Assembly (NCBI GenBank): GCA_002269645.1
Contig: NIVC01002818.1
Location: 1 to 64,000, forward strand
DNA length: 64,000 bases
Reading direction: 5' to 3'
Source: Macrostomum lignano
Taxonomy: Eukaryota
Shown here: piece by piece, positions 31,816 through 55,705 of the stretch
How positions within the stretch are numbered: position 1 is the first letter of the stretch
Layout: every line of letters starts with the position of its first letter
Notes under the pieces: model-generated
The model's input: only the letters and a program-made list of their open reading frames with translations
The model's database searches: none
Told to the model about the DNA's origin: nothing
Position numbers and translations under genes: made by a program

Positions 31816-31823
31816 AGTGGTTT

Positions 31824-33630: not shown

Positions 33631-34449
33631 TAAGGCTTTGGTTGTTGAGTTTCTCGCGGAGTTGCTGCAGTTTCTTACGGCGGATGCTGCCAGAGACTGC
33701 CTTATATCCTGATTCTAGCAGCCAATGAGAGCTAAGGCGGCGGAAGAACAGAGCAATGTCGAGCTTATCAAGTTTCATGTCATGTCTTCGATGATAAGAA
33801 ATCAAGCTTGTGAAAGCCACCCCGCTGTACACCCTGAGTGAGCGTGTGCCTGCGCATTTGTCTGTGTGTGCTTAACTGCCTCCTCGCTGGCTGCATTTTC
33901 TGCAGTTTACAAAAGCAGCAAGCTGACTGCGGCTCTGTAGCTTGCTTTTTTTCACTAAATGTATTTAAATATTCCTGTGTGAACAACTGAACAGCCTCGC
34001 TGAGTGCGGTCAGAATCGGTCACAATGGTCTCAGTATGCACAACTTAAGCAGAAGGAAGCTGCACTCGATTTTCTGAGAAATGAGCCGGACACAGATTTG
34101 TCGTATCTCGAGCGCAGTCCGTATGTCCTGGCCTGGGCTGCGGACCCTCCGCAGCAGGCCCAGTATGCGTTCTCCCACTGACTAAGCAGCACCGATTGCT
34201 CCCCTCACTGACTCACCCGAGTCACCCCCACTGCACGCTCCCCATTGCTTCATGCTACATATCTCCTGTACGTTTGTGTTCGTGCCACAGCACGCCTATA
34301 CGGTTCGGGCCCCAGAGCCCAGAAATATAACGGTAAACACGACCCCCTCAGTCTCTCCACTTTTGTACTGACTGCCTGCCTGCTCACGGGATCCGCTCCC
34401 AGGCAGAGCCTTGAACTAAACTCCAAGACTCACTCTCAAGTCATTACAC

Positions 34450-35420
34450 CGAATCTCTCGGATTCGTCTGTGGCAAAACCCCATACAGTGCAATCCGTTC
34501 TCTCGAGAGTCACTGGGAAGACATTTATAATTTCGTATGAGGTGTAGTTCAGCCATCACACCTTTGCATCACACCGGGCCGGACCTGCATGCCAGACAGA
34601 CTGCTCCGGTGAGTCTCCCATCCGGGATATGGAGAGCAGACTCAATGGCAGCTGCAGACAAGCAAGCGTGGCAGACAGGCTGCTGTAAAATTGTTTTACT
34701 GCAAATTTACCGTGACGATTTTGAGCCCAAAGCCAATATTTGGCTCTGTGTATCTTGTAACTAAGGGTGTAACTAAGGGCGCTGTTGAGGAGCTGCGACG
34801 GGAGAAAAAAATTGCTCAACTGAAACGTAGCCCGCCTCAGCGCTTCTATAGCAAGCAGAAGCTCAGTGGGGAATGGAAATGTTTCGTGTAAGATGTTAAG
34901 CAGTTTTTTTGAGAAGCCGACTTGAATCACCTGCCTTCTCCACTTGGGAGCACCCACAGTCTCAGGAGTTCTCAAGTATACTCTTGATGACTGAGACAGC
35001 GAGCGATAAGATAGGGTTATAAGCTAGACTAGAGTCAAGACAAGAAATGAGATAATGCTATACTCGGCAACATCAAAAAGTTGCCATCACAGAAAATTCC
35101 GTCTGTGGTCGCCACTTTTGAGAGCGCAGGTATAAAGTCTCTCAATCTTTTCCAGCGACGCAACTCAGCTACGCCGTGGCAGACAGGAGTTGAGGAATGA
35201 AGTGGGGGAGCGATATGCGAAGATTGGACGGATTAAAGCTACAGCGATCAGTTTTCTTACATATTTTATTTTAGAATAGTCCAAGACAAATTGCTCACTG
35301 GCGCATATAAAGTGGCGACTGTCCGATGTCGCTGAGTATATTAGCTGAGGCAGTAGTGCTGAATTGTAGAAGTGAGAAGAAAGGTGCTCCTTGAGAGCTT
35401 GGCTGACTCTATTCATTAGT
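34450..35420 (-). mobile_element. Decayed non-LTR retrotransposon (LINE) ORF2 C-terminal fragment
   Basis: LIRPIFAYRSP...LEKIERLYTCALK resembles the post-RT LIRPILEYASPVW...LERVQRRATK motif of CR1/L2-like LINEs; contains stops and frameshifts. Confidence 0.4.
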
Positions 35421-35599
35421 TTGCAAAGAGATGGTGGATGCAGAAAAAGCGCGCATGGGGTGGTGGGGTTGAATTCAAGTTCAATTCAAGTGCTGCGGTA
35501 GGCCATCAGCAGTCGGTGGAGTTGCTCATTGGAGTGGCCCGCGCTTACTCAGATGCCGCTTCAGCACCTGGGCAAAGCGCTCCGCCTGGGGTCTACGAC

Positions 35600-37745
35600 A
35601 ATTGACTGCCACAATTTGACTGCGGTCAATTTGACTGCCGAGCAATTTGACTGCCGACAAAATGACTGCGAACAAAATGACTGCGGACAAAATGACTGCC
35701 GACAAAATGACTGCGAACAAAATGACTGCGGACAAAATGACTGCGGACAAAATGACTGCCGACAATTTGACTGCGGACAAAATGACTGCCGACAAAATGA
35801 CTGCGAACAAAATGACTGCGGACAAAATGACTGCGGACAAAATGACTGCCGACAATTTGACTGCGGACAAAATGACTGCCGACAAAATGACTGCGAACAA
35901 AATGACTGCGGACAAAATGACTGCGGACAAAATGACTGCGGACAAAATGACTGCCGACAATTTGACTGCGGACAAAATGACTGCCGACAAAATGACTGCC
36001 AACAAAATGACTGCCGACAAAATGACTGCGGCAATTTGACTGCCGAGCAATTTGACTGCCACCGAAATGACTGCCGGAAAAATGATGCTCCTAAAGTTTA
36101 GCACTCTGTCAACCCTTTTAAGTCTATGCATGTAGTGAAATATTGTATTTACGAGCTAGAATGATGCAGAACAGAACATAACCTTTATACAACAAGCTGT
36201 AACAGCTGTTGAAACCCGCGGATTTTGAACAGTGGGAAATGGGAACTCCAATCTTAGGAACTATTTTGCATATATTCTAAAATCTGAAGTTAAACTCAAG
36301 CAAAAACTTTTATTATTAGAGTTAAACATAACATAGATTACATTCGTGTAAAATTAGGATTGGAGGCAAACTATTGATATTGTTGGCTGGGGTGCGGCGC
36401 AGAATGTCAGAAAAACTCTGGCCTCTACTTCTGCCTCTCGATCCCTATGTTCCTTGCATCCTTTGAACCTTCTATCTTCTCTTCTGTTTTCTCACTTCTC
36501 TCTCGTCTCTTCTCTCTCGTCTCCCCTCTCTCATCTGTCATCTTTACTCTCTTATACTGGTATGTTCTCTCACCTCTCTCCTCTGTACTCTTCTCTTTCC
36601 CCTCTTTTGACTCCTCTCTTTCCTTTCTCCTTTCTTGCCTTTTCTTTTCTTCTCTTCTTTCTTCTATACTCTCTCCCTCTCTTGTCTTTTCTCTTCTCTC
36701 TCTGCGCTCTCCTCTCTCCTCTCATATATCGTGTTCACTCTCTGACTCTCATCTTTGCTCTCTCATCCCCCTCTCATCTTTACTCTTCACTCCTGTGTAC
36801 CTGTCACTTCACTCTTTCCCCTCTTCTGACTCCTCTCTTTCCTTAGTCCTCTTCTTTTCCCTCTTCTATACTCTCTCCCCTTTATTCACTTCTCTCGTCT
36901 CTCTGCACTCTGCTCTCTCCGCCTTCATCTCTCATCTCTCATCTCTCCTTTCATCTCTCTTATCTCTACAATCTCTCCTTTCCCCTGTCTTCTTTTTCAA
37001 CTTCTCTCTCATCTCTCTCTCTTCTTTTTTTATAATTTTTTAAATTTATGCATCATGTTGGCAAGGCGAGTTTTTCACATCAGCCGATAATTTTTATCAA
37101 TAAACGCAGATCAAAGCCGAAACTGGGGAGGGGTAGAGAGAATCGGGGAGGGGATGAGGGAATCTGGGAAGGGAAGGGGGAATCGGAGAGGGGAAGAGGG
37201 AATCGGGGAAAAGAAGAGGGAATTGGGAAGGGGAAAAGGGAATTGGGGAGGAGAAAGGGAATTGGGGAGGAGAAAGGGAATTGGGGAGGGGAAAAGGGAA
37301 TTGGGGAGGAGAAAGGGAATTGGGGAGGAGAAAGGGAATTGGGGAGGGGAAAGGGAATTGGGGAGGGGAAAGGGAATTGGGGAGGGGAAAGGGAATCGGG
37401 GAAGGGAAGGGGGAATCGGGGAGGGGAAGGGGGAATTAGGGAAAAGAATAGGGAATTGGGAAGGGAAAAGGGAATCGGGGAGGGGATGAGGGAATTGGGG
37501 AAAAGAAGAGGGAATTGGGAAGGGGAAAAGGGAATTGGGGAGGAGAAAGGGAATTGGGGAGGGGAAAGGGAATCGGGGAAGGGAAGGGGGAATCGGGGAG
37601 GGGAAGGGGGAATTAGGGAAAAGAATAGGGAATTGGGAAGGGAAAAGGGAATCGGGGAGGGGATGAGGGAATTGGGGAAAAGAAGAGGGAATTGGGGAGG
37701 GGAAAAGGGAATCGGGGAGGGGAAGAGGGAATCGGGAGGGGAGAG
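35600..37745. repeat. 15-bp array (GACTGCCGACAAAAT, 35600-36075), CT-rich low complexity (36440-37030) and GA-rich ~20-bp array (37125-37745)
   Basis: Tandem and low-complexity sequence visible. Confidence 0.85.
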
Positions 37746-38054
37746 AAATAATCGCGAAGAGAATAAAAGCCGTCGTTTCTAAAACGCAAGCAGTGACTCA
37801 GTTTACAGATAAAGTATTTTATCGGCAAATTTTAATTGCTGGGAGTCCTCAAGCCTTCGTCAGTTAAGAATTTGTTATTCGAAGAACAAGCCAACAAAGT
37901 GAAAGCAGATTTACAGGTGCTGCAGATTTTTAGCACAGTTTACAAAGCGCAATACAAGCAAAATCAGTTTGCTTCCTATGAAAATGCGAAAGACAGGAAC
38001 TCCAAAACACCGATTGAGTCTGGCAAACCCGATTGATGAAGAATGAAGCTGTGA

Positions 38055-41000
38055 TCACAGCAGCATGTCGGCAAAGTACTGATCGAACTCCTCCTCTCTG
38101 AAAGCGGATTTGAAAGGCGAAGAAACTGCAGTGAGAAACCTCGGTTTCCATGGCAGAGACCAGCTAGGCTGCAGGCATTTCCACCGCCCCCCCCCCTCAG
38201 AGACCAGCTAAGCTGCAGGCATTTCCACCGCCCCCCCCTCAGAGACCAGCTAAGCTGCAGGCATTTCCACCTGCCCCACCTCAGAGACCAGCTAAATTGC
38301 AGGCATTCCCACCTGCCCCCCCCAGAGACCAGCTAAGCTGCAGGCATTTCCACCTGCCCCCCCTCAGAGACCAGCTAAGCTGCAGGCATTTCCACCTGCC
38401 CCCCCTCAGAGACCAGCTAAGCTGCAGGCATTTCCACCTGCCCCCCCTCAGAGACCAGCTAAGCTGCAGGCATTTCCACCTGCCCCACCTCAGAGACCAG
38501 CTAAGCTGCAGGCATTTCCACCTGCCCCCCCTTAGAGACCAGCTAAGCTGCAGGCATTTCCACCTGCCCCCCCTCAGAGACCAGCTAAGCTGCAGGCATT
38601 TCCACCTGCCCCCCCCCTCAGAGACCAGCTAAGCTGCACAAAATCCACACCTGGACGCGCCCTCATCTTCCACAGCCGGAGCTGGTTGTCGCCAAATTTC
38701 ACTCGCGTCAGCCGCTACCGCGTCTCCGGGCGGCTCCGCTGCTGCCTGCTGCTGCTCTGCTGCCTGCCGGATGGCGCGGATCCCCGCCAGGACTTCGTCC
38801 TCAGCCTCCGTATCGGCGGCTGCGTCAGCTTCGGCTTTGGGTTGCAGCGGCTGCGTTGCCGACTCGGAAAGACGCTGCCGCTTGGCCTCGCGTCTGCGGT
38901 GCCTTCGGGTTCGGCATGCGGCGGGTGCGATGGGTTAGGGTGCCGAGGTGATGATGGCGAGGTGATGATGCTGAGGTGATGATGCTGAGGTGATGACACT
39001 AAGGTGATGATGCTGAGGAAGGGATGCTGAGGTGAGGATGCTGAGGTGATGACACTGAGGTGATGATGCTGAGGTGATGATGCCGAGGCTGAGGTGATGA
39101 TGCCGAGGTGATAATGGCGAGGTGATGATGCTGAGGTGATGATGCCGAGGTGATAATGGCGAGGTGATGATGCTGAGGTGATGATGCTGAGGTGAGGATG
39201 CTGAGGTGAGGATGCTGAGGTGATGATGCTGAGGTGATGATGCTGAGGTGATGATGCTGAGGTGAGGATGCTGAGGTGATGACACTGAGGTGATGATGCT
39301 GAGGTGATGATGCCGAGGCTGAGGTGATGATGCCGAGGTGATAATGGCGAGGTGATGATGCTGAGGTGATGATGCCGAGGTGATAATGGCGAGGTGATGA
39401 TGCTGAGGTGATGATGCTGAGGTGAGGATGCTGAGGTGAGGATGCTGAGGTGATGATGCTGAGGTGATGATGCTGAGGTGATGATGCTGAGGTGTTGATG
39501 CTGAGGTGATGATGATGAGGTGATGAGTTAATTAATTTAAGGTGATGCTAACCAAAGGTAAAGATTTGAGCAGACTAGTTAATGACGCTGAGCAGCTGCA
39601 CCTGTCAATCACTCACTTTTTCTTATAGTTGAGCCGTGCCGAGCAGTCCGGGCAGAGGCGCAGCTTCACCAGCGCATTTTTTGTTTCTCCGCCCTCGGTG
39701 TAGCGAAAGTTCACCTCCCAGCTGACCAGGCCGTCAGCCTGCGGACGGTGAAAATTAGTTCCAATGATTACAGCTAGCTTCCATGGTGATGAAGAAACAA
39801 GAAGGCTGGGATGGGGGGGTCGATTTCACAAGCCCGAAACTTCCTATCGTGGAATTCGAGTTGAGTTAACAAAAAATGACAGCAGTACACATGACCAGAG
39901 GTGAGGATGCTGAGGTGAGGATGCTGAGGTGAAGATGCTGAGGTGAAGATGCTGAGGTGAGGATGCTGAGATGAGGATGCTGAGGTGAGGATATTGAGGT
40001 GAAGATGCCCTAGTGAGGATGTTGAGGTGAAGATGCCCTAGTGAGGATGTTGAGGTGAAGATGCTGAGGTGAGGATTCCCTAGTGATGATGCTGGGAGGG
40101 TGCTAAGTTAGAGATTCTGAGGTGGTCTTAACCACAGCTGTGAGCAGCCTCATAGCGAGGCACTCACCTGCTCGCAGCGCTTCCCGCCGCAGGCGAACTG
40201 CCCCCTGCCGGACAGAACCTCAGCCTCTGTGCGCCATCGCAGGCCGACCCGGCCCTCCTTGTAGCCCCTCAGGTCGGCAATGCAGTACTCCTTGTACAGC
40301 TTGTCCCAGTAGCGCTTGGCGAGCCGCTGCTCCCAGCTACCGGCCTCTTCGGAGCCGCCGTCCCACACGAACCGGTGGTGCTCCCTGATGATGTCGATGT
40401 CTCGCTTGTCGCGCGAGGCGTCCCTTTTGAAGTCAGCGTAGCTGCCGCCGAAGTACCTGGAAATTGGATGGCGCAGATGGGGCCTTTGATCTAAGCTCCG
40501 TGCATGGACCTGTGCTCACCGGAGCCGCGCCTGCGACACCAGCCGAAACCCGAATCCCGATTGGACGATTGGCTTTGATTTTGAGGATAAGGGAGGGTGC
40601 TGACACCCGACTTGAAGACAAGGGAGGCAAAGCTGCTGATTACTGCGAGCTTAGTCAATTAACAGTGGGCTATGCAAGTTAAGCAGAGATGGCTATGGTT
40701 AGTACGCAGCTGAATAGGCTGCTTGTTTACCAGCATGCGGACGGCTACCTGATGTAGTTGTTCACCAGCATCTTGTGCCTCGAATAGGCGTCCATCGCCA
40801 GCAGCTGCTGCCTCCGAGCGCCGGCCTCTTCTCGACAGGCACCGTCGGCGACTGCCACGCCGCCGCTCCGCCGCGGTGCACCAAAGCCGGATGTTGACGA
40901 GGCAGCAGCTGCCCTTGCCTCATCGCGGGGACGCGAGCGCTTCCGGTTGGACACCGAAGCGAGCCGCACGGAGGCGGCGTCCTCCGAGGCTGCCTGGCTG

Positions 41001-41074
41001 ACGGAGTCCTCGAAACCGAAGTCCGACTGCCAGTCATCGGGCCCGACGTCGTTCGCCGTTGGCAACGGCTCGGC
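38055..41074 (-). CDS. FRA10AC1: FRA10AC1 homologue (splicing-associated); exons 41074-40749, 40456-40168, 39738-39617, 38902-38651, 38097-38055; no genomic ATG found
   Basis: Recognised motifs LLAMDAYSRH, DIIREHHRFVW, WEQRLAKRYWDKLYKEYCIADL, LRWRTEAEVLSGRGQFACG, WEVNFRY.E.GETKNALVKLRLCPDC and C-terminal EEEFDQYFADMLL*. Splice phases are consistent. The exon 4 acceptor could alternatively be 9 nt downstream, still in frame. Confidence 0.93.
38155..40090. repeat. FRA10AC1 intronic minisatellites: 42-bp (38155-38635) and GATGCTGAGGTGA-type arrays (38945-39525, 39897-40090)
   Basis: Tandem units visible between the exons. Confidence 0.9.
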
Positions 41075-41406
41075 CTGCGAAGTGGGTTGGGGAGGGGCGG
41101 AACCTGTGGCTGAGGAGGAGCGCAACGACTGGGGACGAGCGGAACCTGTGGCTGGGAGGGGCAGAACCTGACTGGGGAGGGGCGGAACCTATGGCTGGGG
41201 AGGGGGGCGGAACCTGTGGCTGGGGGCGGAACCTGTGGCTCGGGGTGGAACCTGTGGCTGGGGAGGGGTGGGCAAGAAAAACAAGTGGCTATATTTTCAT
41301 ATAAAGGGCCATCAAAGCAACATATAAAATGAGCAGAGCCAACAGAAATCACAAAGCCAAACATGCCAATTCGGGTCAGATTCAGACTCAGATGAGTGCA
41401 TCAGTT

Positions 41407-41412
41407 TTTATT
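41407..41412 (-). promoter_or_regulatory. Candidate polyadenylation signal (AATAAA) of the zinc-finger gene
   Basis: TTTATT on the plus strand, ~410 nt after the stop, followed on the minus strand by a U-rich tract and the FRA10AC1 acceptor. Confidence 0.5.
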
Positions 41413-41820
41413 ATTTTTTTTAACAAATACAGACAGCAAAATGCAATCCAAATATGGTTCAAAGCACACAGAGCGGAGAGTCAGAAAAAGCTACGAGCTG
41501 CTCATTGATTGCTTCGTAGAAACCGTGCATGCGATGAAACTGACGGGCGAATGACTGAGTGGTGCCGGGGCGAATGACTGAGTGGTGCCGGGGCGAATGA
41601 CTGAGTGGTGCCGGGGCGAATGACTGAGTGGTGACGGGGCGAACGACTGAGGGGTGCCGGGAGAACTGGAGCAGAGTGCAAAAGTACAGGACTGACAGGC
41701 TAATAACAGAGCATTCCTTGGCCTCGGCTGTTAGATAATCGAAAACAAAGAGAAGCGCAATACAAATAAGTTATAAATTAAATGTTAATTTTATGATTGG
41801 ATGAGCTGCTTTGCTAACTG

Positions 41821-44674
41821 TCACTGATCCGTGAGAGCAGTCCCAGTCCCAGTCCCAGTTGCTGCAGCCGATGACTCCACGGGAGGCGCATCGGCAGGCG
41901 GCTCCGACATCGTCGTCGCTGCCGCCTCCGAGGCAGTCGACAAGGCCGCCACCGATGTCGGCACTCGCCGCTTCGTCCGCAGCTGCTGCTGCAGCGAGTC
42001 GCTGTCCTCGCTGTCCGCGTCCTGGCTGAAGCAGAGCCCCGGCTGCTCCGCCTCCTCCTGAGCCGCCGCCGGCTTCTGCCGCTTCTGCTGCTGACGGCGG
42101 GCCACCGCGTGCAGCTCGTCGTCGTCCGCTAGCGCGGCGTTCTTCGCCGCTGTCGCCGAGTCCTCGTCGGAGCTGCAGGTTGTCGCAGCGGCAGCGGCGG
42201 CCACAGCGGCGGAGGTCCTGGCGCGCCGCTTCCGCAGCACTTTGCCGCGCTGGCGCTGTCGCTTCGCGTCCTGCACCGGCGACTCCGAAGCGCCACCGAC
42301 CGCGGCGTCCTCGGCGTCGGCAGCGGCGGCCCCGAGTTCGACTTCATCGTCCGCTCGCCGATCCGAGGCGGTCGAGTCCAGCGAGGACGAAATCGAGCGG
42401 CGCTGCGGCTGGCGCGACTTCCGCTTGAGACTCGCCGACGACCCCTGCTGGGCCTGGGCGGCCTCGGCCGGCTGCTGGGGATGCCGGGGCTGCTGAAGCT
42501 GCGGCATGCCGGCCGCGTCGGACTTCTGGCGTCGCCGGGCTGTCCGCTTGGTGCGCCGGTTGCTGACGACAGCGGCGCCGCTGCCACCAGCTGGTCCAGC
42601 GGCGGGGTCGGCGTCGGCAACCGGCAGCGGGGCCTTGAAGCCCGGTGGCTGCGCCTGCGTGCTGCCCGGACCGCCGCCGCTGATGCCGCCTTCGCCTGTT
42701 GTTGAAGCCGCGGCTGCTGCGGCTGCCGCTGCGGCCGCCTTCCTCTTGCGCTTCCTCTCGCCGTCAGCGCCGCCGCCACCGGAGGCGGAGCAGATCAGCA
42801 GGTGCTCATCGGCAGCCTCGCTACTATCGAAGATTCTGCCGCAGTTGTGGCAGGTGAGCTGCGGGTGGCTGGCCCTGCGGTGCTGCAGCAGCAGGTGCTG
42901 CATGCGGAAGGACAGGGTGCACACGCCGCACTGGTAGGCGTCGCTGGCAGGGTCGTGGCAGTCCACCTTCAAATCCTTCAGACGAACCTGCGGGTCAAGG
43001 AGGGAAAAGCAGATTCAATCAACTAATACCGGTAAATCGATTAATCAACCAACTAATCAATCAATTAATACATGTAAATCAATCAGCTAATCAGTCAATC
43101 AATAAACTAATCAGTCAATCAATAAACTAATCAATCGATTAATCAATTAACTAATCAATCGATTAATCAATTAACTAATCAACCAATCTATCTATCTATC
43201 AATCATCCAATCAATCATTAAATCAATCAATCAATCATCTAAGTAGTCGAATAATCCATCAATCAATCAACTAATAAGTTAATCAACTAATCAGTCAATC
43301 AATCAATCAATCAGTCATCTAAGTAGTCAAATAATCCATCAATCAATCAATCAAGCCCAGTACTCACAGAACACCCAAGAAACAAAGACTAATTGCCTCA
43401 CCTTGTGTTGAGAGATCACGTGATCGGACAGGTTGCGCACCTGCTTCTGGCACACAGGGCACTCTTTAGTCACCCGGGGCGACTCGTGGATCTGCTTGAT
43501 GTGGCTGACCAGGTTTTGCTTGCCCTTCAGGCTGGCCTGGCAGTGCGGGCAGGGGAAGCAGCGGCTCTCGGAGGTCTGGCCGTGCACCCGCTGCCTGTGC
43601 ACCGCCAGGAGCCGCTCGCTGCTGAACACCTTCTTGCACACTTCGCAGGAAATCTCGTCCCAGACCTCGGCTGCGACCGATTTGGAGGCTGAGGCGGGGA
43701 CAGCGGACGCCGGCAGCGGCTCCTTGTGCACCGCGGCCATGTGGTTGCGCAGCAGGTAGAGGCGCTTGAAGTGGTGGCCGCAGAGGCCGCACTGGTGCGA
43801 TTCGACTGGGTGTACATTGTGAAGGTGGACCCGCAGCCGGTACTCCGAGTTGAACTCCTTGCCGCAGGCCTGCGGTGCGACGGTTCGGGGGTCCGTTTGG
43901 GATTATCAGGCAGCCCAGCAACTGAGGATCTGGGAGGCTGGAACAGCAACTGAGGATCTGGGAGGCTGGCCCAGCAACTGAGGATCTGGAAGGTTGGCCC
44001 AGCAACTAAGGATCTGGGAGGCTGGCCCAGCAACTGAGGATCTAGGAGGCTGGCACAGCATCTGAGGATCTGGGAGGCTGGCACAGCATCTGAGGATCTG
44101 GGAGGCTGGCAAAGCAACTGAGGATTTGGGAGGCTGGCCCAGCAACTGAGGATCTGGGAGGCTGGCCCAGCAACTGAGGATCTAGGAGGCTGGCCCAGCA
44201 ACTGAGTAAATCAAAGCAGGCAGGCGATTTAACCTCGCAGGGATGCGTGCCGGTATCAGAGAAGCCGTGCAGGTAGTGCATGTGCTGGATCAGTTTGATG
44301 TGGTGGTTGAACAGGTTGACGCCGTCGCACAGATGGCAGCGCAGCAGCTTAGTGTGTTTGGCCATGACGTGGGCTGTCAGCTCGCGCAGGATGCCGTCGC
44401 TCTCGGCTACTTTGATGCGTCGCCGTCTGCTGCCACCGCCACCGCAGTTGAAATCGTCAGCGCCACTCCGAGTGTCAGAGTCGGAGCAGAACGGGCAGCT
44501 GACGGGGTTTTGAGCAGGTTGAAAATCAGTAACTCGAAATTTACAAATCTGCAAACAGACAGAGGCAGGCAGACAGACAGGCAGATAGACAGACAGACAG
44601 ACAGACAGACAGGCAGACAGGCAGATAGACAGACAGACAGACAGGCAGACAGACAGACAGACAGGAAGGCAGGC

Positions 44675-44705
<31 letters not shown>

Positions 44706-47700
44706 GACAGACAGACAGGCAGACAGACAGGCAGACAGACAGGCAGATAGACAGACAGACAGACAGACAGGCAGATACAGACAGGCAGACAGGCAGACAG
44801 ACAGACAGACAGACAGACAGGCAGACAGACAGACAGAGAGACAGACAGGCAGACAGGCAGGCAGGCAGGCAGGCAGACAGAAAAACACTCAGTGTCACAA
44901 ACCCGGCGGCGGGCTGCACGCTGGCACAGCAGAGCACCACGAAGGCCACGCAGCGGGTCAGATCGTAGGGCAGCAGCCGCCAGCGCAGCAGGTCCGGGCA
45001 GCCGAGGCCCCGCTCGTGCAGCTGGTCGAAGTCCAGCAGGCCGGGGCGCAGCGGCTCCGTGGTTGGCGGCAGCCGCAGGTCCGGGGCGGCCCGCTTCAGC
45101 AGGGCGTGCACCCGGCGCACCCGCTTGTCGCAGAACTGTGCGTAGCCGAGCAGCAGGAACAGGTCCACCCGGCGGCCGCGCTGCCGCCGCTGCTCCGGCA
45201 AGTCCTCGTCCTCCGCCTTCTCTTCCGCGGCTGAGGTTGGCGGCTCCACAACCAGCAGCAGGCGGAGGTTCGGCCACGGCCGGGCCAGCCAGAGGCCTTC
45301 GAACTGGCGGTCGGAGGTGCTGGCCAGCAGGCCGGAGACCAGCTCGTTCAGGCGGTAGTCGGCCAGGGCCCGCTGGGAGCTGCGAAATGGAAACATATGC
45401 ACATGGGGTCACTGAGCTGCTGATCAAGGAGGGCAGTCGAAAAGGTGCAAGACGATGAAATTGATGGAGTTGATGAGCGAGGTGCAGAGATGATGAAGAT
45501 CGGTGCGGATGTTCCTTGCCAGTCTGGCGAGTTGAGAGGTGGCATGGCACGGATGTTTGGGGATGGGAACCAAATTCAGGCCACGTGATTTCGTCGTGAT
45601 TCCACCCATCTCCGGATGGTCAAGCGCCTGGAACTTCCTCAAGGAAGGCTCGTTATCATTGCATGGCGGCTGGCGCAGCGTTTTGCGTTACCTGCTGCAG
45701 TAGGGGGGGAGGACTCACGACTAAAAGGTCGGGGGTTCGATTCTCGACCCACTCAGAACAATTTGTGTCCTTGAGCAAGACACTTAACTCTGCATTGCTC
45801 TACTCAAGATCTGCTGTTTTACACTTGATGAGATTTGATGAGATCCGGCATTGATAGAAGACTAACCCTTACCTGAACTCCTCCACGCTCAGTGGCGCGG
45901 CCGGCTCCTCGTCACCTGAGGAGCCGCCGACTTCCTCGCCGTCGCCCTCTTCATCCTCGTCGTCGTTGTCATCTTCGTCCGCCGCGCCGCCGTGTCTGTC
46001 GCGACGTCCACCGAAGCCAAGGCCGAAGTCGAGGCCTTCAAAGCTGCCAGCAGCTCCTCCGCCAGCAGCCTCGACGCCGCCTTCGGATTCGTGCCGCCGG
46101 CGCTGCTGCAGCCTCAGCAGCTGCTTCTCGTCATCGAATCCGTAGCTTGCCGCCGAGCCCGCAGCGGCGTCGGGATTGTCGAAGCAGTCGAAGCCGGCAT
46201 CAAATTCGTCCCACTGCTCGGGAGTGGCTGAGGAGGCCTTCACGTTCAGCATGGCGAGCAGCTTGCCGAACACCGAGGCTCCGCCGGTGCCCACGATAGC
46301 GTCGGCGTCGGAAGCGGCAGAGACAGCGGCGGTGTCGGCAGTTTCTACTGCTGCTGCAGCGGCGGTGTCGGCAGTTGCTGCTGCTGCAGCGCCGCAGTAG
46401 TCGGTGTCGACGAGGTCGGGCTGCTCCTTGACGAGCTGATCGACAGCCGCAGGCGAAGGTTTCGACGGCTGCTGCTCTGGCTGTAGAACTGCATCAAAGG
46501 ATCAGAGAGCAGTACTGCTTGGATTGATGCGGAGAACTGGGGGGGGGGGTTGAGAAAGCAAAATGGGAATTAGGACAGACTATGAGGAATTAGAGAATAC
46601 AAAAAGGGATCTGAAGAAACTACTAGGGGATTTCTGTGACTATAAATGGGGATCAGTGGCTTTAGATGGGGATCAGTGGCTACAGATGGGGATCAGTGGC
46701 TACAGATGGGGATCAGTGGCTATAGATGGGGATCAGTGGCTATAGATCAGTGGCTATAGATGGGGATCAGTGGCTATATATGGGGATCAGTGGCTATAGA
46801 TGGGGATCAGTGGCTACAGATGGGGATCAGTGGCTAAGCGGGCAAGTGAGCAGGGAGATCTCCGGCCACTCACTCGGCTCCTCAACTGTCAGCACCTCGT
46901 GCCGCTCGGCACGGACATCGACCAGCTCCACGGGCCGGAAGCCGGGCGGCGGCCTGCCGAAGCGCATGCCCAGCAGGCGCCTGTAGGGCTGCTGCATGAG
47001 GAAGGCGCGGCCTTCAAGGAGGCCACCGGATTCGTCCATCAGGCTGTCCAGCTGCCGCATGTAGGCGTCAGAGACTACGCAGAGGCCGCGAACGGGCCAC
47101 CTGGCCTGGTCCATGGTGGCGAAGGTGGCCGGGTCATCCGCCAGGTACTTGCCCCAGGTGGTGGCGCCGCGGGGCAGCGTCATGGCCGAGCCCACCTGCG
47201 GCAGGCGGTCGCAGCCGGAGGCCGGCTCGAACAGCTCGCGGCAGAACTCGAACGAGCAGGTGAGCATGGACAGGTAGACGGAGCTCGGGTCAGACGACTC
47301 GGCAGCGGCCAGCCCGGCCAGAAGGCGGCGGTCCCTGTCCGACGGGCGCTGCCTGGCGAACCTGGCCAGGAAGCCGGGCTTCGGGCGCACCAGGCCGCGC
47401 CGATGCAGCAGCAGGCTGGTGAGGTTCAGCGGCGCCCCGGCCGAGGACGGCGCCGTTGACGGCTCGGACAGTCGGCGCCGGATGTCCGAGTCGTCCGGAC
47501 AGCAGGTGAGGGAGCCGAGACTGCGCCGGATGTAGCAGTCGGGGGGCACCGGCTGCACTGCGTTGGGGCCGCGCTGCTGCGATGACGGCGAGCGGCGGCG
47601 GCGTCGGCGGCGAGGCTGCGGCATCTCCTGAGAGGATGAAGCGTCGCCTGCGGGGGCAGCTGCGGGCTCGGGGGGCGGCTCAGCTGGCTGCTCTTCGTCC

Positions 47701-47714
47701 TGGTCTGACGACAT
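41821..47714 (-). CDS. Large multi-C2H2 zinc-finger protein (~1290 aa); exons 47714-46874, 46488-45873, 45379-~44903, ~44498-44234, 43869-43402, 42987-41821
   Basis: C2H2 fingers CHLCDG...HMHYLH, CEACGKEF...HLHNVH, CGLCGHHF...HMAAVH, CEVCKKVF...HRQRVH, CPHCQ...HIKQIH, CGVCTLSF...HRRASH. Phase-compatible junctions. The exon 3/4 boundary is ambiguous (44903/44498 or 44899/44548). Confidence 0.82.
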
Positions 47715-47985
47715 TGCGCTGCGGGAAGGAGGAGGCGGCTAATGACGATTGCAGATAGGCTAATGGTGATTCCAGATAGGCTAATGGTGATTCCAGATAG
47801 GCTAATGGTGATTTCAGATAGGCTAATGGTGATTTCAGATAGGCTAATGGTGATTCCAGATAGGCTAATGGTGATTCCAGATAGGCTAATGGTGATTCCA
47901 GATAGGCTAATGGTGATTCCAGATAGGCTAATGGTGATTCCAGATAGGCTAATGGCGATTGCAAATTGGCTAATGGCGATATTGA
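43015..47985. repeat. Zinc-finger-gene repeats: (AATC)n 43015-43352, 28-bp 43912-44205, (AGAC)n 44556-44880, 20-bp 46650-46836, 21-bp 47738-47985
   Basis: Tandem units visible; one array per intron or spacer. Confidence 0.9.
45661..45830 (+). mobile_element. tRNA-derived SINE with CORE/V-like central domain, in a zinc-finger gene intron
   Basis: A-box TGGCGCAGCG (45671), B-box GGTTCGATTCT (45734), then TGTGTCCTTGAGCAAGACACTTAAC, which resembles the conserved CORE/V-SINE motif. Confidence 0.6.
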
Positions 47986-48179
47986 ACGGGCTAACACAGA
48001 TTTTACAAGCATATTTAGCTAATTTGAATTCTATTGAAAGCTACTGAATCTGCTAGACTGGCCATAAAAGCTGGAATTGAACATCCTGAATGAGTAACAA
48101 GACTAAATAGAACAAAGACAGCACGGTGGTAGGCAAGGAGCCTAATGAAGAATCCTATTTGTATTAATAATTATATATA

Positions 48180-48185
48180 TTTATT
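48180..48185 (-). promoter_or_regulatory. Candidate polyadenylation signal (AATAAA) of NDUFB9
   Basis: TTTATT on the plus strand, ~225 nt downstream of the NDUFB9 stop. Confidence 0.5.
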
Positions 48186-48408
48186 TAGTATGGTTTCCAC
48201 CGCGTACAATCGAATACGCAGTCGTTAATAGCTAAGATGGTAAAGAATTTCCTGTTTTTCTTAAATCTACATTTTTAAGCTACTAGAAGTAGTCAGGTGG
48301 ATTATTAGACACTCTTAGCCTACATAAAAGAAACTAAGCGATCTGATACGTTGGAGGGGAACTGTTGGTATCCAGCGCAGTCATCCGCACACACTGGGAG
48401 CTGGCCAG

Positions 48409-48885
48409 TCAGCCCATCGGCCCCGTCCACTCGCCGGTGTCCCTGGCGTCTTGGCCGTATTTCTGGTGCCAGCGCTCGATGTACTCCTTCTTGCGCTGCT
48501 CCCGCCTGGCAAAGTAGTCCGGGTACTGCGCCTTCTCCAGCGGGTGCCACAGGTCCAGAAGCGCGTCCGGGTAGTACTGCCAGCGGCCGAAGGCCACGCC
48601 GCCGGGGTCGTTGGGCCAGCGGAAGGGGAAGTAAGACTTCTTGGCCTGCAGCTCCGAGTAGGCGGACTCCAGCAGAGCCTTGGCCTTGATCGGGTCCTCA
48701 ACTTCGCGGTTCTCGTCGAAGCGCTGGCGCAGCAGCACGGCGTGGTAGCGGTAGTCCAGGCGCTCGTGGTGCTTGGCCCGCACCTCGTATAGGGCGGCCT
48801 TGTACAGCCGGCACACCTTCTGCGCATGCGACAGGTAGCTGGTGCGCAGGTAGGCTGGGAGCGGCGGACCGGGGAGGGTCGGCAT
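48409..48885 (-). CDS. NDUFB9: NADH dehydrogenase (ubiquinone) 1 beta subcomplex subunit 9 (LYR family), single coding exon, 158 aa
   Basis: SHAQKVCRLYKAAL LYR motif, YRYHAVLLRQRFDEN, PGGVAFGR, LDLWHPLEKAQYPDYFARREQRKKE; GC3-rich codons. Confidence 0.95.
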   Translation of the reverse strand: MPTLPGPPLPAYLRTSYLSHAQKVCRLYKAALYEVRAKHHERLDYRYHAVLLRQRFDENREVEDPIKAKALLESAYSELQAKKSYFPFRWPNDPGGVAFGRWQYYPDALLDLWHPLEKAQYPDYFARREQRKKEYIERWHQKYGQDARDTGEWTGPMG

Positions 48886-49009
48886 GGCTGCTCAGCTGAG
48901 TCTACTGCCGATTGCTCTTTCAGCTTGGATAACTGCTAGGGCTGGGATCCGAGTGCGGCAGCCGCTGCTGCTGCTGCAGGTGGAGAGATGTGGTTGATCT
49001 ATCAGGTGT

Positions 49010-52000
49010 GGTATGGGGTCTATCAGATTGCAATACGGGATCTATCAGATTGAGGTATGGGATCTTCAGATTGGGGTATGGGATCTATAAGATTGCGGTA
49101 TGGGATCTTCAGATGGGGTATGGGATCTTATGATTGGGGTATGGGATCTTATGATTGGGGTATGGGATATTATGATTGGGGTATGGGATCTTATGATTAG
49201 GGTATGGGATTTTCAGATTGGGGTATGAGATCTATCAGATTGGGGTATGGGATCTTCAGATTGTGGTATGGGATCTTCAGATTGGGGTATGGGATCTTCA
49301 GATTGAGGTATGGGATCTTCAGATTGGGGTATGGGATCTTCAGATTGGAGTATGGGATCTTCAGATTGAGGTATGGGATCTTCAGATTGGGGTATGGGAT
49401 CTTCAGATTGGAGTATGGATCTTCAGATTGGGGTATGGGATCTTAAGATTGGGGTATGGGATCTTCAGATTGAGGTATGGGATCTTCAGATTGGGGTATG
49501 GGATCTTCAGATTGGAGTATGGGATCTTCAGATTGGGGTGTGGGATCTTCAGATTGGGGTATGGGGTCTTCAGATTGGGGTATGTGATCTTCAGATTGGG
49601 GTATGGGATCTTCAGATTGGGGTATGTGATCTACAGATTGGGGTATGAGATCTATCAGATTGGAGTATGGGATCTTCAGATTGGGGTGTGGGATCTTCAG
49701 ATTGGGGTATGGGGTCTTCAGATTGGGGTATGGGATCTTCAGATTGAGGTATGGGATCTATCAGATTGGGGTATGGGATCTATCAGATTGAGGTATGGGA
49801 TCTATCAGATTGGGGCATGGTATTTATCAGATGGGGTATGGGATCTATTAGATGGGGTATGAGATCTTCAGATTGGGGTATGGGATCTTCAGATTGGGGT
49901 ATGGGATTTTCAGATTGGGGTATGGGATCTTCAGATTGGAGTATGGGATCTTCAGATTGGGGTATGGGATCTATCAGATTGAGGTATGGGATCTATCAGA
50001 TTGGGGTATGGTATTTATCAGATGGGGTATGGGATCTATTAGATGGGGTATGGGATTTATCAGATGGGGTATGGGATCTATTAGATGGGGTATGGGATCT
50101 ATTAAATGGGGTATGGGATCTTAAGATTGGGGTATGGTATCTGTCAGATTGGATAAAACAACTGAAGCAATTAGGTAAATAATAAAAGTGAGCTCAAGCA
50201 GTAGGACGAAGCACTGTTAGAATCGACCTATTATTAAATCTATGCATATCAGTGCTAAAATGTACGAGCTAATGTAATCAGTAGTCTGGCTGGACAAAAA
50301 TTGAATAAAATTCGCATAGACGTCAGCCAGAAGGCGGACAAGACTGTACAATGCCGGGATAGCGCCACAAACTGCCTATGGTAGAAAACGAGTCGCAGTA
50401 TCATTATAATAAAAGACACGGGTTGGCTGTAAAGGCGAAACGCCGCAATGAAGCATGGCTGCAGTGGACTAATGGCAGCCGCACATGCTACTCACAGTAA
50501 TATTAGCAGCATATATGCATAAAACGAGAAATAACAGCGTATAGCAGTTTAACAACAGGATACAATGTTACAGCTCGGCAGGGCGAACAGGGTAAAACTG
50601 ATAATAGGTCAATATTGAAGCTCCATCAACTAAAACGTTTTGTGTGGATTCAGCATTCTGGGATCTGGGAGATTTAAATCCCAAACTGAGGATCTGGGAG
50701 ATTTATATCCCAAGCTGAGGATCGGGGAGATCTATATTCCAAGCTGAGGATCTGGGAGATTTATATCCCAAGCTGAGGATCTGGGAGATTTATATCCCAA
50801 GCTGAGGATCGGGGAGATCTATATCCCAAGCTGAGGATCTGGGAGATTTATATCCCAAGTTGAGGATCTGGGAGATCTATATCCCAAGCTGAGGATCGGG
50901 GAGATCTATATTCCAAGCTGAGGATCTGGGAGATTTATATCCCAAGCTGAGGATCTGGGAGATTTATATCCCAAGCTGAGGATCTGGGAGATTTATATCC
51001 CAAGTTGAGGATCTGGGAGATCTATATCCCAAGCTGAGGATCGGGGAGATCTATATTCCAAGCTGAGGATCTGGGAGATTTATATCCCAAGCTGAGGATC
51101 TGGGAGATTTATATCCCAAGCTGAGGATCTGGGAGATCTATATCCCAAGCTGAGGATCTGGGAGATCTATATCCCAAGCTGAGGATCGGAGAGATCTATA
51201 TCCCAAGCTGAGGATCTGGGAGATCTATATCCCAAGCTGAGGATGCGGAAGATCGATATCCCAAGCTGAGGATGGGGAAGATCTATATCCTAAGCTGAGG
51301 ATCCAAAAAATAATATTTCCAAATGGGATCTCGGATATCTGGTGTCGCCACATCACATTTCTGTTCGACTCAGATCAGCCGTCGTCGGGCCTCTCCCCGC
51401 CGGCCGAGGCCTCGCCGTCCTCGTCCTCATCGGACTGCATCCTGGCCCTGAGCACGGCCTCGAACTCGTTGTAGTGCATCTTCCGCTTCAGCCGGAACTG
51501 CCGCCGGCGCTCTCGCTCAGCGGCGTCCAGCAGCTCGTCCTCGGCGTCCAGGTCGTGCAGGTCGGCCGGGCCGCCGAAGCCGCGTCGATTCGGCGAGGCA
51601 GACTCGCCGCCGCCAGCAGCAGCCACGGCACCGGCATCGCCGTCCTCAGCAGCCGCGGCCTCCTCGAGACGCTCCATCAAAGCGTCTGGCGACACGGCGT
51701 CGGTGAAGCTGGTCCGGCGCTGCTGCGGCTGCTTCGCCGGCTGCTCGGAGGCCGCCGGGCAGCTCCTCGAGTCGGCGTCGCCTTCGTCGCCGCTGGCAGT
51801 CGAAGCCGCGTCGCTGGACAGCGCCGGCTCGTAAGGGGTCGGCGCTTCGTCCACCTGCCGGGGCGGTGATGCACAGATTCATCTAGATCCCAGATTTACC
51901 TAGATCCCATACAGATTCACCTAGATCCCATACAGATTCACCTAGATCCCATACAGATTCACCTAGATCCCATACAGATTCACCTAGATCCCATACAGAT

Positions 52001-52105
52001 TCACCTAGATCCCATACAGATTCACCTAGATCCCGTACAGATTCACCTAGATCCCATACTGATTCATTTAGATCCCATACAGATTCACCAAGATCCCATA
52101 CAGAT
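49010..52105. repeat. 21-bp (GGGGTATGGGATCTTCAGATT, 49010-50150), 29-bp (CTGAGGATCTGGGAGATTTATATCCCAAG, 50655-51305) and 21-bp (CCTAGATCCCATACAGATTCA, 51875-52105) minisatellites
   Basis: Tandem units visible. Confidence 0.93.
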
Positions 52106-52616
52106 TCATCTAGTTCCTATAGACCCTCTCAGATCATAATACAGATTCCACCGATTCCTATACCCTCTCCCAAATCCCGTAAGAATCCCTCAGATCCGAT
52201 ACAGATTTCCCGGATCCTATAGATTTCCCAGAATCTTAGAACTTCTCAGGCCCTAAAGATTGCTCAGATCTCAGACTACACTGATCTTATAGATTCCCCA
52301 GATCCCATTTTACCTTTATCTTATAGACTGCTCAGACCCTATGGAATCTTGTGAATTCCCAGGCACTACACACGTGACATAAGCCGACGCCCACCTTCAT
52401 GTGCCCATAGTCCTTATCCGCAGGATGGTAAGTCTTCAAGATGTTCATTTCGTCCCACTGGAACTCTTTCCTGGCGTCGGTGTCATCAGAGTTGCCGATA
52501 GCGGCAGCAGAACTGGCAGCTTCCTGACTGTCCTCGTGCTCATCAGTGCTGATGGATTTGCACTTGAGGATGCCCTTCTTTGGCCGGGCATTCAGCGGCG
52601 GCGGGCTGTTTGACAT
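51375..52616 (-). CDS. PPP1R2: Protein phosphatase 1 inhibitor 2; exons 52616-52395 and 51854-51375 (233 aa)
   Basis: PKKGILK (SILK-type) motif, [23 protein letters not shown]|[19 protein letters not shown]; phase-0 GT-AG intron. Confidence 0.95.
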
Positions 52617-54032
52617 CTGACTGATTGACAATGACAGGGGAATGACAGCTGGAATGCCAGTCAGCAGGGTGACACTGCAGCAATTAGTAAGGAGGATGAA
52701 ATCAACATCAACTTGCGTAGAGGTAAAAACAAGCGTGAGCTTACACTGCTACTCGTATATAATTTCATAATGCTTCACTACCATGAAAACCTGTTTATAT
52801 ACTAAGAATATGATTAATATGCTGTGCTTAATTTCTAATTTTACTTTTAACCTAACCAAATTAATCAATCACGAAATGCATATTTATGCTAGCCATGTGA
52901 TATTAAAGAGCAAGATTGAGAATAAAAGTGGAATTGTATTGAAATTATCACAATATAATCCAAAAGTACAATGTCAGCTCAAATAATCTCTTATACATTG
53001 TTGATGCACTTAAATCCTAATTTGCTTTTTGGTGCCCTAGAGTGATTTTTGCCTTTATGGCTAACTTTTTATATACAAGTAAAATATTAATACTTTATTT
53101 AAATACAAAACTGATAGGTCTATATTATTTTATTAAACATGCCTATTAGTAACAGCAATTTTTTAATTCCAAACTTTCTACCAAATGTTAAATTTGTAGA
53201 CCCCAAAATGTTATAAGGCCAAGAAAATGACTGACATTAAATTGGGCAAGATCAAACCAAAAATAAACAAAAAACCAAGAGTAGGCTAAGGTTGATACTT
53301 AACAACTAAGATTATTATAATTTATACTTAAAAATAACTATAAATGCCATGGTTTTCAAATATCAAAGTCACTAAAATATTAGTAATGTTAATTACAATT
53401 GGCTAATTTACCAGGTAAAATGATTGCTAGAAAATTATAAAATTGAAAATCTATATGATAGCTGAGTAGCATTACATTAGCCTAGCTAAAGATGGGAAGA
53501 AACTGAAATTTTTTAACCAATTCAATTTGATTTAAATATCTGACAATCAATTCAAATATCAGATAATACTAAATATGGTTATATCAGTGAATAACATCTC
53601 TTTGGTGGCCTTTAACCAATAGGCCATCATCTTTACTTCTTGTTCAATGAAAATGCATTTACCCCTCTAAGTTTATGGGAATTAGCACCTCCAAATCCAT
53701 GCTCAACTTGATTCCTAATCTTTCACTTTTCCTTAAAGCTTCAAATCTAAATACAATTTACATGCAACTGCTTTTAAATCACCCCTGCCTTTCCTTAAGA
53801 CATGCTATGTATTATCATTTCCTTAATTTTCTCTCCATATTTATGAGCCACAAGCTGTCCAAAACCCCTAGCACTTCACTTTGGTCTTTTACTCTTCAAA
53901 ATCAAACTTCTCAGCCCTCTACTCTTTCTAAAGCCTTTTTAAATCTTAACACAAAATGATTTATTGTTATATCTCTAATCAAAAATGCGACTTACATGTA
54001 AAAAAACCCAAAAGCAAAATCAACGCAACCTT

Positions 54033-54096
54033 GGGTAAACGGCAGGAGTAACTATAACTGTCTTAATAAGCCAAAATGTCTCGTCAGCTACTTAGT
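54033..54096 (+). other. Diverged 28S rRNA fragment (helix 69-71 region, R2/I-PpoI target), copy 1
   Basis: GGGTAAACGGCAGGAGTAACTATAACTGTCTTAATAAGCCAAAATGTCTCGTCAGCTACTTAGT versus the conserved 28S GGGTAAACGGCGGGAGTAACTATGACTCTCTTAAGGTAGCCAAATGCCTCGTCATCTAATTAGT. Confidence 0.85.
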
Positions 54097-54961
54097 ACTA
54101 CTACTTGGGTGTTTTTTCGGGTGGGCATTTTTGCGACTTCCTTGGTTGGCCGCCAAATCGGTCGGCCAGATCGGCCGACTCGGCCGACTGTTGCGCATGT
54201 ATGTCTCTAATCCTTTTGCCTTTCCTCATAGCACAACTATCCCTAATTCTTTTCCTTCATTTATAAGCCACAACATCAATACTTTACTCTTAATTTGTTT
54301 CAAATAATCTTTCCACATCAAAGCAATTATTTGGCATTTTCTTGTAGATTGTCAACTTTTTCATTCCAATTTGAACCAAATATTCTAAATATTCATCCTA
54401 TCTCTAAACCTAGCATAGGCCTACCTATTTATTGATAAAACAATATCTAAAATTGTTTTTTATTTCTAGAATATAAAAACCATATAACACTTTTAGAAAG
54501 AAGAAAGAGAAAGAAAAGAAAAGAAAAAAAAGCAAAAAATCATATACAAAGTGAAAATTAAGTTGCAATTGGAAGAACTAAGTTGCAATCAAGAGGAACT
54601 AAGTCACAATCAGGAGGAACTATATCACAATTTGGAGGAACTAAGTCACAATCAGGAGGAACTACGTCACAATTTGGATGAACTAAGTTGCAAATCTGAA
54701 CAAAACTAAGTTGCACCAGACGGGTGAAATTTTAAGGTTGGGCATGTAAGTATATTCCCACATTTACACAATATTGATTCAAAGTTGGAGCCAAAATACA
54801 CGTAAACTTCTATTTAAAATAGAAAAATTATGCAATTTTTTAAAATATATACCAATGGTGTTTTTCTCTTTGTTGTATTATCCAAAATGGCATAAAAACA
54901 GGACAAAACAATGATCTCATTTCCAGCTCTTCCTACAACTCCAGTAATGGCACTGATTTTT

Positions 54962-55025
54962 GGGTAAATGGCAGGAGTAACTATTACCACTGTTTTGTAA
55001 GAAAGTGATTTGTCATCTAATTAGT
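54962..55025 (+). other. Diverged 28S rRNA fragment, copy 2
   Basis: GGGTAAATGGCAGGAGTAACTAT...TTGTCATCTAATTAGT; the middle part is more decayed. Confidence 0.7.
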
Positions 55026-55182
55026 CAAGTTGATTTTAATTTTACCATCAAGTTTCATTGCATTGGGCATTATGTGTTTATAAGCATGTATGTACATGAA
55101 TACACTTGGCTATATGGCTTATTTTTTATCGTAAAAGCAACTTAACTATGAAAGAAGAATAAGCAAAGTTAATGTAATGTTT

Positions 55183-55245
55183 GGGTAAATGGTAGGAATA
55201 ACTATAACTGTATTATAAGGGCTAAATGCCTTATCAGCTAATTAG
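55183..55245 (+). other. Diverged 28S rRNA fragment, copy 3
   Basis: GGGTAAATGGTAGGAATAACTATAACTGTATTATAAGGGCTAAATGCCTTATCAGCTAATTAG. Confidence 0.7.
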
Positions 55246-55705
55246 GCCCTAATACTACTTTTAGAATTTTTTGAATGGGCATTTTTGCAGCTTACCTTGG
55301 CTGGGCCCCTTGCCAGCCAGCTAGATTGGCTTGGTATTGCATCTAGATGATCTATATAAGGACAAAAGTGGCATAATCCTGTATTAATCCATATATTAAA
55401 AATGGTCTATCAGTAGGTAGGTATGTGTGTGATTGATTCTAGAAAAAATGGCTGAACTGATTTTCTTCACACTTGCACTATTCAATCAGAATTATAGTCT
55501 AAGGATTAAAATTCCAATATATAGCATATTACTTTTTGAGAATAAAAAGAAAAACTATTAGTTGTATTTTGCAAAGCACTAATGCAAAAACATCTACTAA
55601 AAATGCTAAAAATGACATATTAGGAATGAAAATCCACCGAATAGTTCAATAGTTATATCATCATATGTCATGTAACTGGCCTATAAGGATTAGGTTGGTT
55701 AGGCT

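Follow-up and report, generated by a model that had tools for sequence, protein, structure and literature searches.

We analysed a 64,000-nucleotide window of the genome of the flatworm Macrostomum lignano (positions 1 to 64,000 of contig NIVC01002818.1, assembly Mlig_3_7, GCA_002269645.1). Four minus-strand genes lie within it in the order PPP1R2 > NDUFB9 > C2H2 zinc finger > FRA10AC1, and we hold it to be probable that they form a four-gene spliced-leader (SL) operon. A first-pass annotation made from the letters alone had proposed this interpretation, which is supported by coding sequences (CDSs) cut at SL sites, by the names of transcriptional units, by the spacers of paralogous copies and by the SL operons known from this organism. 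We infer polycistronic transcription from the annotation published for Mlig_3_7 (NIVC00000000; Wudarski et al. 2017, PMC5730564).

The head-to-tail arrangement of four functionally unrelated genes on the minus strand is borne out by the open reading frames (ORFs), by Pfam and by the GenBank gene models. The four genes are uninterrupted by any gene on the opposite strand, and GenBank holds no further gene between 28055 and 58885. By chance, four genes would share one strand in 1 of 8 cases, and AGs are so common that finding one close to an ATG proves little; the local sequence facts alone are thus weak, and the pattern goes beyond chance because the annotation, the paralogs and the biology of the organism support it. 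The elements of the cluster, in the order of transcription, are:

51375-52616, minus strand: PPP1R2 (protein phosphatase inhibitor 2) CDS; exons 52616-52395 and 51854-51375; ATG at 52616, stop codon 51377-51375
48974-51374, minus strand: spacer PPP1R2 > NDUFB9, 2401 nt; 29-bp minisatellite 51303-50661, 508 nt of unique sequence, 21-bp minisatellite 50152-49010; ends CCTGCAG
48409-48885, minus strand: NDUFB9 (complex I LYR subunit B22), single-exon CDS; presumed 5' untranslated region (UTR) 48973-48886
47719-48408, minus strand: spacer NDUFB9 > zinc finger, 689-690 nt; AATAAA 48185-48180, 21-bp minisatellite 47980-47737; ends CCCGCAG
41821-47718, minus strand: C2H2 zinc-finger gene, six exons, 47718 or 47699-46874, 46488-45873, 45379-44903, 44498-44234, 43869-43402 and 42987-41821
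41075-41820, minus strand: spacer zinc finger > FRA10AC1, 746 nt; AATAAA 41412-41407, 23-bp repeat 41661-41545, ~22-bp repeat ~41270-41090; ends TTCGCAG
38055-41074, minus strand: FRA10AC1, five exons, 41074-40749, 40456-40168, 39738-39617, ~38902-38651 and 38097-38055
37831-37836, minus strand: ATTAAA, candidate poly(A) signal of the last gene, ~220 nt past the FRA10AC1 stop codon

The PPP1R2 ORF encodes 233 aa, is split by one intron that contains a 21-bp minisatellite, and matches Pfam IPP-2 (E=8e-30). NDUFB9 (158 aa, Pfam Complex1_LYR) is 58 % identical to flatworm NDUFB9, and FRA10AC1 matches Pfam Fra10Ac1 (E=3e-50). The zinc-finger gene has a genomic ATG at 47714; its 1272-aa model starting at 47699 is identical to PAA55040.1 and matches Pfam zf-C2H2 (E=7e-12) and zf-Di19. 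Its PDB matches are generic C2H2 arrays (CTCF, ZNF568) and no specific orthologue was assigned.

Deposited annotation and paralogous copies

M. lignano uses one 35-nt SL, CGGTCTCTTACTGCGAAGACTCAATTTATTGCATG, which ends ...TTGCATG; trans-splicing affects about 30 % of the genes of this species, and operons, each of two to nine genes, contain about 15 % (PMC8629364). In the same study the favoured trans-acceptor motif is [T/C]TNCAG, and simple repeats inflate the intra-operon distances; after repeat subtraction the distances have a peak near 100 bp, and the operon cut-off was 1 kb. The annotation pipeline (TBONE) divided transcripts into genes where SL-containing reads and poly(A) tags form peaks, and the resulting genes were deposited in GenBank. 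The start of a deposited CDS may thus retain the position of an SL cut. We found that GenBank CDSs flagged 'partial' open right after an AG, at 41074 and 47699 in the window and after CCCGCAG and TTCCAG in the paralogous copy on NIVC01000639.1. These SL-cut partial CDSs, and the need of FRA10AC1 for an external ATG, suggest SL trans-splicing at the 5' ends of the zinc finger and FRA10AC1.

The first-pass annotation had placed the G of an acceptor AG ahead of each gene, at 52617, 48974, 47719 and 41075, and all four are there. At FRA10AC1 (TTCGCAG, G at 41075) its placement is exact to the base, the GenBank CDS opening at the next base, 41074. At the zinc finger there are two acceptors, CCCGCAG (G at 47719) and, 19 nt downstream, GACCAG (G at 47700). 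The model of the paralog on NIVC01000639.1 starts 1 nt after CCCGCAG, in agreement with the site at 47719, while the window model starts instead at 47699, after GACCAG; judging from these CDS starts, both acceptors appear to be used. The NDUFB9 acceptor CCTGCAG (G at 48974) lies 88 nt 5' of the CDS. Its CTGCAG matches [T/C]TNCAG, and TGCAG/CAGCAG (the slash marks the splice position) is retained in all three copies of the locus. The NDUFB9 CDS is complete, and its start therefore carries no information on the 5' end of the transcript.

Co-transcription is suggested by the locus tags. According to the naming rule of the annotation authors (their Suppl. Fig. 5a) the prefix of a tag stands for a transcriptional unit, so a prefix common to unrelated genes indicates that they derive from one unit or from units that share at least 95 % identity. 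For brevity we call the window copy A, NIVC01000639.1 copy B and NIVC01000386.1 copy C; B and C each carry the whole locus. The prefix Mlig005215 is common to the zinc finger (Mlig005215g2, deposited as 'BOX15_Mlig005215g2, partial') and FRA10AC1 (Mlig005215g3) of the window, and Mlig025187 to PPP1R2 of copy C (Mlig025187g1) and the zinc finger of copy B (Mlig025187g5). PPP1R2 of copy B has a separate prefix, Mlig015312. The shared prefixes imply that assembled precursor transcripts bridge the gene junctions. They fit two units, one holding NDUFB9, the zinc finger and FRA10AC1 in the window and the other holding an upstream exon (exon 0, described below), PPP1R2, NDUFB9 and the zinc finger in copy C, with NDUFB9 presumed to belong to both from the numbering of the tags. 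The splits between units fall exactly where the minisatellites are longest, and the authors warn that repeat length splits units (Ustyantsev & Berezikov 2021, PMC8629364). Pieced together from the paralogs, the locus tags thus point to one precursor across the genes.

The copies also allow the spacers to be compared. The NDUFB9 protein is found, identical, on exactly three contigs of GCA_002269645.1. On NIVC01002818.1 its record coordinates equal those in the window, and the locus retrieved from there matches the reverse complement of window 38409-58885 at every base. Paralogous copies of the whole locus fit the known hidden polyploidy of M. lignano with its duplicated large chromosome. We took the non-repeat length of a spacer as the stop-to-acceptor distance minus the bases covered by Tandem Repeats Finder (TRF), which is an upper bound as 3' UTRs are included:

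PPP1R2 > NDUFB9 spacer, copies A/B/C: raw 2401/2401/1258 nt; non-repeat 615-639 nt
NDUFB9 > zinc finger spacer, copies A/B/C: raw 689/878/1445 nt; non-repeat 431-445 nt
zinc finger > FRA10AC1 spacer, copies A/B/C: raw 746/1927/1944 nt; non-repeat 448-475 nt

Raw length differs up to 2.6-fold among the copies and the non-repeat core is near constant, at 615, 431 and 448 nt in the window and 431-639 nt over all copies, in each case below 1 kb. All acceptor regions are conserved among the three copies. The locus thereby combines an organism that uses an SL, a shared orientation and repeat-adjusted distances under 1 kb, as in the operon definition of Ustyantsev & Berezikov (2021). The gaps of ~2.4, ~0.7 and ~0.75 kb given by the first-pass annotation measure 2401, 689 and 746 nt; its description of them as largely minisatellite holds for the first spacer (74 % tandem repeat) and fails for the other two (37 % and 40 %). 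It had also noted AATAAA in two spacers, which we locate at 48185 and 41412, and the lack of a canonical donor in the last two, where a search of both for GT[AG]AG returned none.

Over 38055-55500 the identity between copies is mosaic: copy A is closer to copy C than to copy B in some segments (the NDUFB9 > zinc finger spacer, FRA10AC1 intron 1) and ~99 % identical to copy B elsewhere, a pattern that could be gene conversion between homeologous copies.

The 5' ends of PPP1R2 and FRA10AC1

Two further features bear on the first gene of the cluster:

52617-52656, minus strand: PPP1R2 acceptor cluster, with TTCCAG (G at 52649), AATCAG (G at 52621) and GTCAG (G at 52617, the site of the first-pass annotation)
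55296-55342, minus strand: candidate upstream exon (exon 0), donor GTAAGC at 55295; conserved with its donor in three copies

The 100 nt 5' of the PPP1R2 ATG are identical in the three copies. In copy B the PPP1R2 CDS is 5'-partial and its first base lies 2 nt after TTCCAG, which corresponds to 52649 in the window, 32 nt upstream of the ATG, and matches the published trans-acceptor motif. The AG proposed at 52617 is thus present, and the annotated trans-splice start follows another AG of the same cluster. In copy C the model PAA84187.1 (250 aa) begins in exon 0, ATGCAATACC...CCAAG/GTAAGC, and is cis-spliced to AATCAG/TCAGATG of PPP1R2. From these two models the acceptor cluster seems to take either the SL (copy B) or a cis exon (copy C). 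The first gene is therefore probably not purely trans-spliced and can also receive the cis-spliced exon 55342-55296, which in the window lies ~2.65-2.68 kb upstream of the acceptors. The capped start of the whole unit probably lies in the region of exon 0, which would place the start of the precursor near 55.3-55.5 kb.

PPP1R2 of the window has an intact ORF and no GenBank call, and both paralogs are called (PAA79374.1, PAA84187.1). The missing call is probably due to a submission filter against transcripts overlapping repeats. About 1.4 kb of the window (55524-56960), ending ~180 bp upstream of exon 0, is missing from copy C. Part of this segment matches nearby sequence in inverted orientation, and it may be a transposon insertion beside the likely promoter.

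The FRA10AC1 protein in GenBank, PAA55039.1 ('BOX15_Mlig005215g3, partial'), begins AEPLPT... and has no initial methionine. Its ORF is open from the first base past the acceptor and runs for 93 codons without an ATG until the conserved MDAYSRHK motif. In seven other animals the protein starts ~85-95 residues before this motif, and its initiator methionine aligns with the opening residues of the M. lignano ORF. Joining the SL, with its final AUG, at 41075 gives M-AEPLPT... in frame, with the predicted N-terminus (M)AEPLPTANDVGPDDWQ. As FRA10AC1 is without a genomic start codon, the AUG of the SL must supply the initiator, and FRA10AC1 would be an SL-AUG-initiated ORF, with the SL AUG in frame and no genomic AUG ahead of the conserved N-terminus. 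An SL joined at 47700 likewise puts its AUG in frame with the zinc finger, replacing the genomic ATG. At 52649, 48974 and 47719 the SL AUG is out of frame and opens upstream ORFs of 13-19 codons.

For NDUFB9, FRA10AC1 and PPP1R2 the public run assemblies hold no transcript contig of M. lignano. The reading-frame argument is backed by a single RNA contig of a related species (L004, Logan SRR28338165), which does not bear on trans-splicing directly. Its FRA10AC1 is 76 % identical and has the acceptor ttttag/GCGGAG, whose TAG is an in-frame upstream stop, followed by 90 ATG-less codons; 25 codons differ from M. lignano by synonymous changes only. The contig is fully intron-spliced, yet it carries 57 nt of AT-rich unspliced sequence (positions 1-57) upstream of the acceptor in place of an SL. 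This 5' sequence may reflect a cis-spliced, not-yet-trans-spliced precursor, or an assembly join.

We lean, by a small measure, towards the view that in at least two Macrostomum species FRA10AC1 no longer has a start codon of its own and relies wholly on the SL AUG, and that the variation of spacers among homeologous copies makes the locus a natural experiment on the length that is tolerated and on downstream output. FRA10AC1 is a checkable example of an initiator codon that is not encoded at its own locus, and annotators of flatworm genomes must handle such SL-AUG genes, since their CDSs get deposited as 'partial'. Among the homeologous copies the intercistronic minisatellites grow and shrink freely around a fixed non-repeat core, and differences such as 746 versus 1944 nt before FRA10AC1 could show whether spacer length tunes output between subgenomes.

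Proposed mechanism, alternative readings and known systems

If the four genes form an operon, RNA polymerase II would start upstream of PPP1R2, likeliest near the exon 55342-55296, ~2.7 kb upstream, and all four genes would be transcribed as a single precursor. Upstream messages would be cleaved and polyadenylated, with AATAAA at 48185, AATAAA at 41412 and ATTAAA at 37836 as presumed signals. Downstream messages would receive the 35-nt capped SL at 48974 (NDUFB9), at 47719 or 47700 (zinc finger) and at 41075 (FRA10AC1), and PPP1R2 would take either the SL, at 52649, or the upstream exon by cis-splicing, at 52621. The SL AUG would be the sole available start codon for FRA10AC1 and an in-frame substitute for the zinc-finger ATG at 47700. 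The spacer minisatellites would be neutral filler read through by the precursor.

Several observations weigh against this reading. The evidence for trans-splicing and co-transcription is second-hand, consisting of CDS starts and locus tags, and within a single copy no annotated unit is seen to span the four genes, whose linkage is put together from several paralogs. Units built by StringTie/TACO may falsely merge close genes on the same strand. Support for the NDUFB9 acceptor comes from motif fit and conservation in the copies. The 430-640 nt of unique sequence left in each spacer would suffice for a compact internal promoter, and the 2.4-kb PPP1R2 > NDUFB9 spacer contains neither AATAAA nor ATTAAA. 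Finally, ~60 % of trans-spliced M. lignano genes are outside operons (PMC8629364).

These points feed the main rival, according to which each gene is SL trans-spliced and transcribed from its own promoter in the preceding spacer (monocistronic outron trans-splicing), the common orientation being incidental or due to shared chromatin. The trans-spliced genes not assigned to operons, the 431-639 nt of non-repeat DNA per spacer, the length of the first spacer and its lack of a canonical poly(A) signal, and the chance that assembled units are merge artefacts are all compatible with it. We nonetheless judge it unlikely, given that unrelated neighbours carry common unit prefixes in the deposited annotation and that the repeat-adjusted distances are within the published operon mode. 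The unique spacer segments are 96-98 % identical between paralogs, the same as introns, and so display no extra constraint, although this is a low-power test, the divergence being too small to reveal or exclude internal promoters. An operon with a different number of genes seems improbable to us as well. The cluster could extend into its flanks, or PPP1R2 could be separate and the operon consist of NDUFB9 > zinc finger > FRA10AC1: in the window copy GenBank calls only these three, the tags g2 and g3 suggest a three-gene unit there, and PPP1R2 of copy B stands under its own prefix, Mlig015312. Against this, PPP1R2 of copy C is g1 of a unit cluster that also holds the zinc finger, and the splitting of units follows minisatellite length, the PPP1R2 > NDUFB9 spacer measuring 1258 nt in copy C versus 2401 nt in A and B. 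As for the flanks, no genes are called by GenBank in the 10 kb downstream (28055-38055) or the 6 kb upstream of the cluster, and a Pfam search of ten long flanking ORFs matched only a mariner transposase fragment, with no genes that would extend the operon.

The first-pass annotation had itself raised the caveat that NDUFB9 and PPP1R2 may have ordinary 5'-UTR cis-introns. In its full form this reading makes the genes conventional ones that lack an SL, each AG being the cis-acceptor of a 5'-UTR exon that lies within or past the spacers and is missing from the annotation. The two donor-like sites named in the caveat, GTGAGT at 50495 and GTAAGC at 52744, do exist, and in the copy C model PPP1R2 does receive, by cis-splicing, a genuine upstream exon (donor GTAAGC at 55295). 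The caveat is weakened by the paralogs, in which both named sites are mutated: copy C has ATGAGT for the GTGAGT at 50495, and in place of the GTAAGC at 52744 copy B has GTAAAC and copy C has GTAAAT. The cis-only reading also has to contend with the lack of GT[AG]AG in the last two spacers, with SL-cut GenBank models that open at the acceptors as 5'-partial CDSs, and with a FRA10AC1 that has no genomic start codon and a conserved N-terminus from the acceptor on, which fits an SL ending in AUG. Taken together, we regard cis-splicing alone as very improbable.

Read as a four-gene SL operon, the locus is alike to the SL operons described in M. lignano (PMC5730564, PMC8629364) in species and assembly, the single SL, orientation, repeat-swollen spacers and the authors' unit tags. 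There is no substantive difference from them; PPP1R2 of the window merely lacks a GenBank call. The class was already published (2017, 2021) and the public annotation already treats the locus in this way. We found no paper on this particular locus in the searchable literature. The locus shows that an SL operon is recognisable from raw sequence alone and is otherwise mainly confirmation; mildly notable are that FRA10AC1 has an obligate start codon donated by the SL and that the minisatellites between the genes expand freely from one homeologous copy to another.

The SL2-type operons of Caenorhabditis elegans are alike in that a polymerase II polycistron is resolved by 3' cleavage and polyadenylation together with SL trans-splicing of the downstream genes, and in the co-transcription of functionally unrelated housekeeping genes. 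Unlike C. elegans, M. lignano has a single SL and lacks an SL2-like specialised leader (PMC8629364, PMC12582326), and flatworm SLs are reported to show no specialisation. Furthermore, the raw spacers here are 0.7-2.4 kb versus ~100 nt, and translation can begin on the AUG in which the M. lignano SL ends. In function the locus resembles an operon of C. elegans, but the single SL of M. lignano keeps it outside the SL2 type.

Experiments on Schistosoma mansoni cDNAs have demonstrated that the 3'-terminal AUG of a flatworm SL is used as initiator (Cheng et al. 2006, J Biol Chem 281:733, cited in PMC9851317 and PMC12582326). By comparison, FRA10AC1 and the zinc finger (at 47700) place the SL AUG in frame, which here is deduced from sequence and annotation. 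Dual cis/trans use of acceptor sites is common in flatworms (PMC12582326), and the PPP1R2 acceptor cluster, apparently taking either the SL or a cis exon, resembles the operons of parasitic flatworms in this respect. The threshold used for those operons is at most 300 bp of raw distance (PMC12582326), whereas this locus passes only the repeat-subtracted 1-kb rule.

Flanking sequence and further observations

The SL sequence has no match in the whole window with up to 3 mismatches allowed; SL RNA genes lie outside it. Scanning the window with Rfam and for tRNAs gave zero matches, with no small-RNA gene in the spacers. The mariner match mentioned above is:

58832-59332, minus strand: fragment of a mariner-type transposase (Pfam Transposase_1, E=3e-4), upstream of the cluster in AT-rich sequence

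Another transposase gene of mariner type (251 aa; L002 16229-16984, minus strand) lies within a zinc-finger intron of copy B and is missing from the window. Intron 3 of the zinc finger (44499-44902, minus strand) is almost wholly a (CTGT)n microsatellite with the non-consensus donor GTTTGT, and the gene model that includes this intron reproduces the deposited protein exactly.

At 16000-21000 the window has 63-67 % GC and ORFs of 400-520 codons on both strands, none of which has a Pfam match. Exons are GC-rich (~60 %), as against a block of 33-40 % GC at 52.7-62 kb. Tandem repeats are very dense (54 TRF rows at a score of at least 200, with unit sizes of 9-183 bp), and nearly every intron and spacer of the window contains minisatellite arrays.

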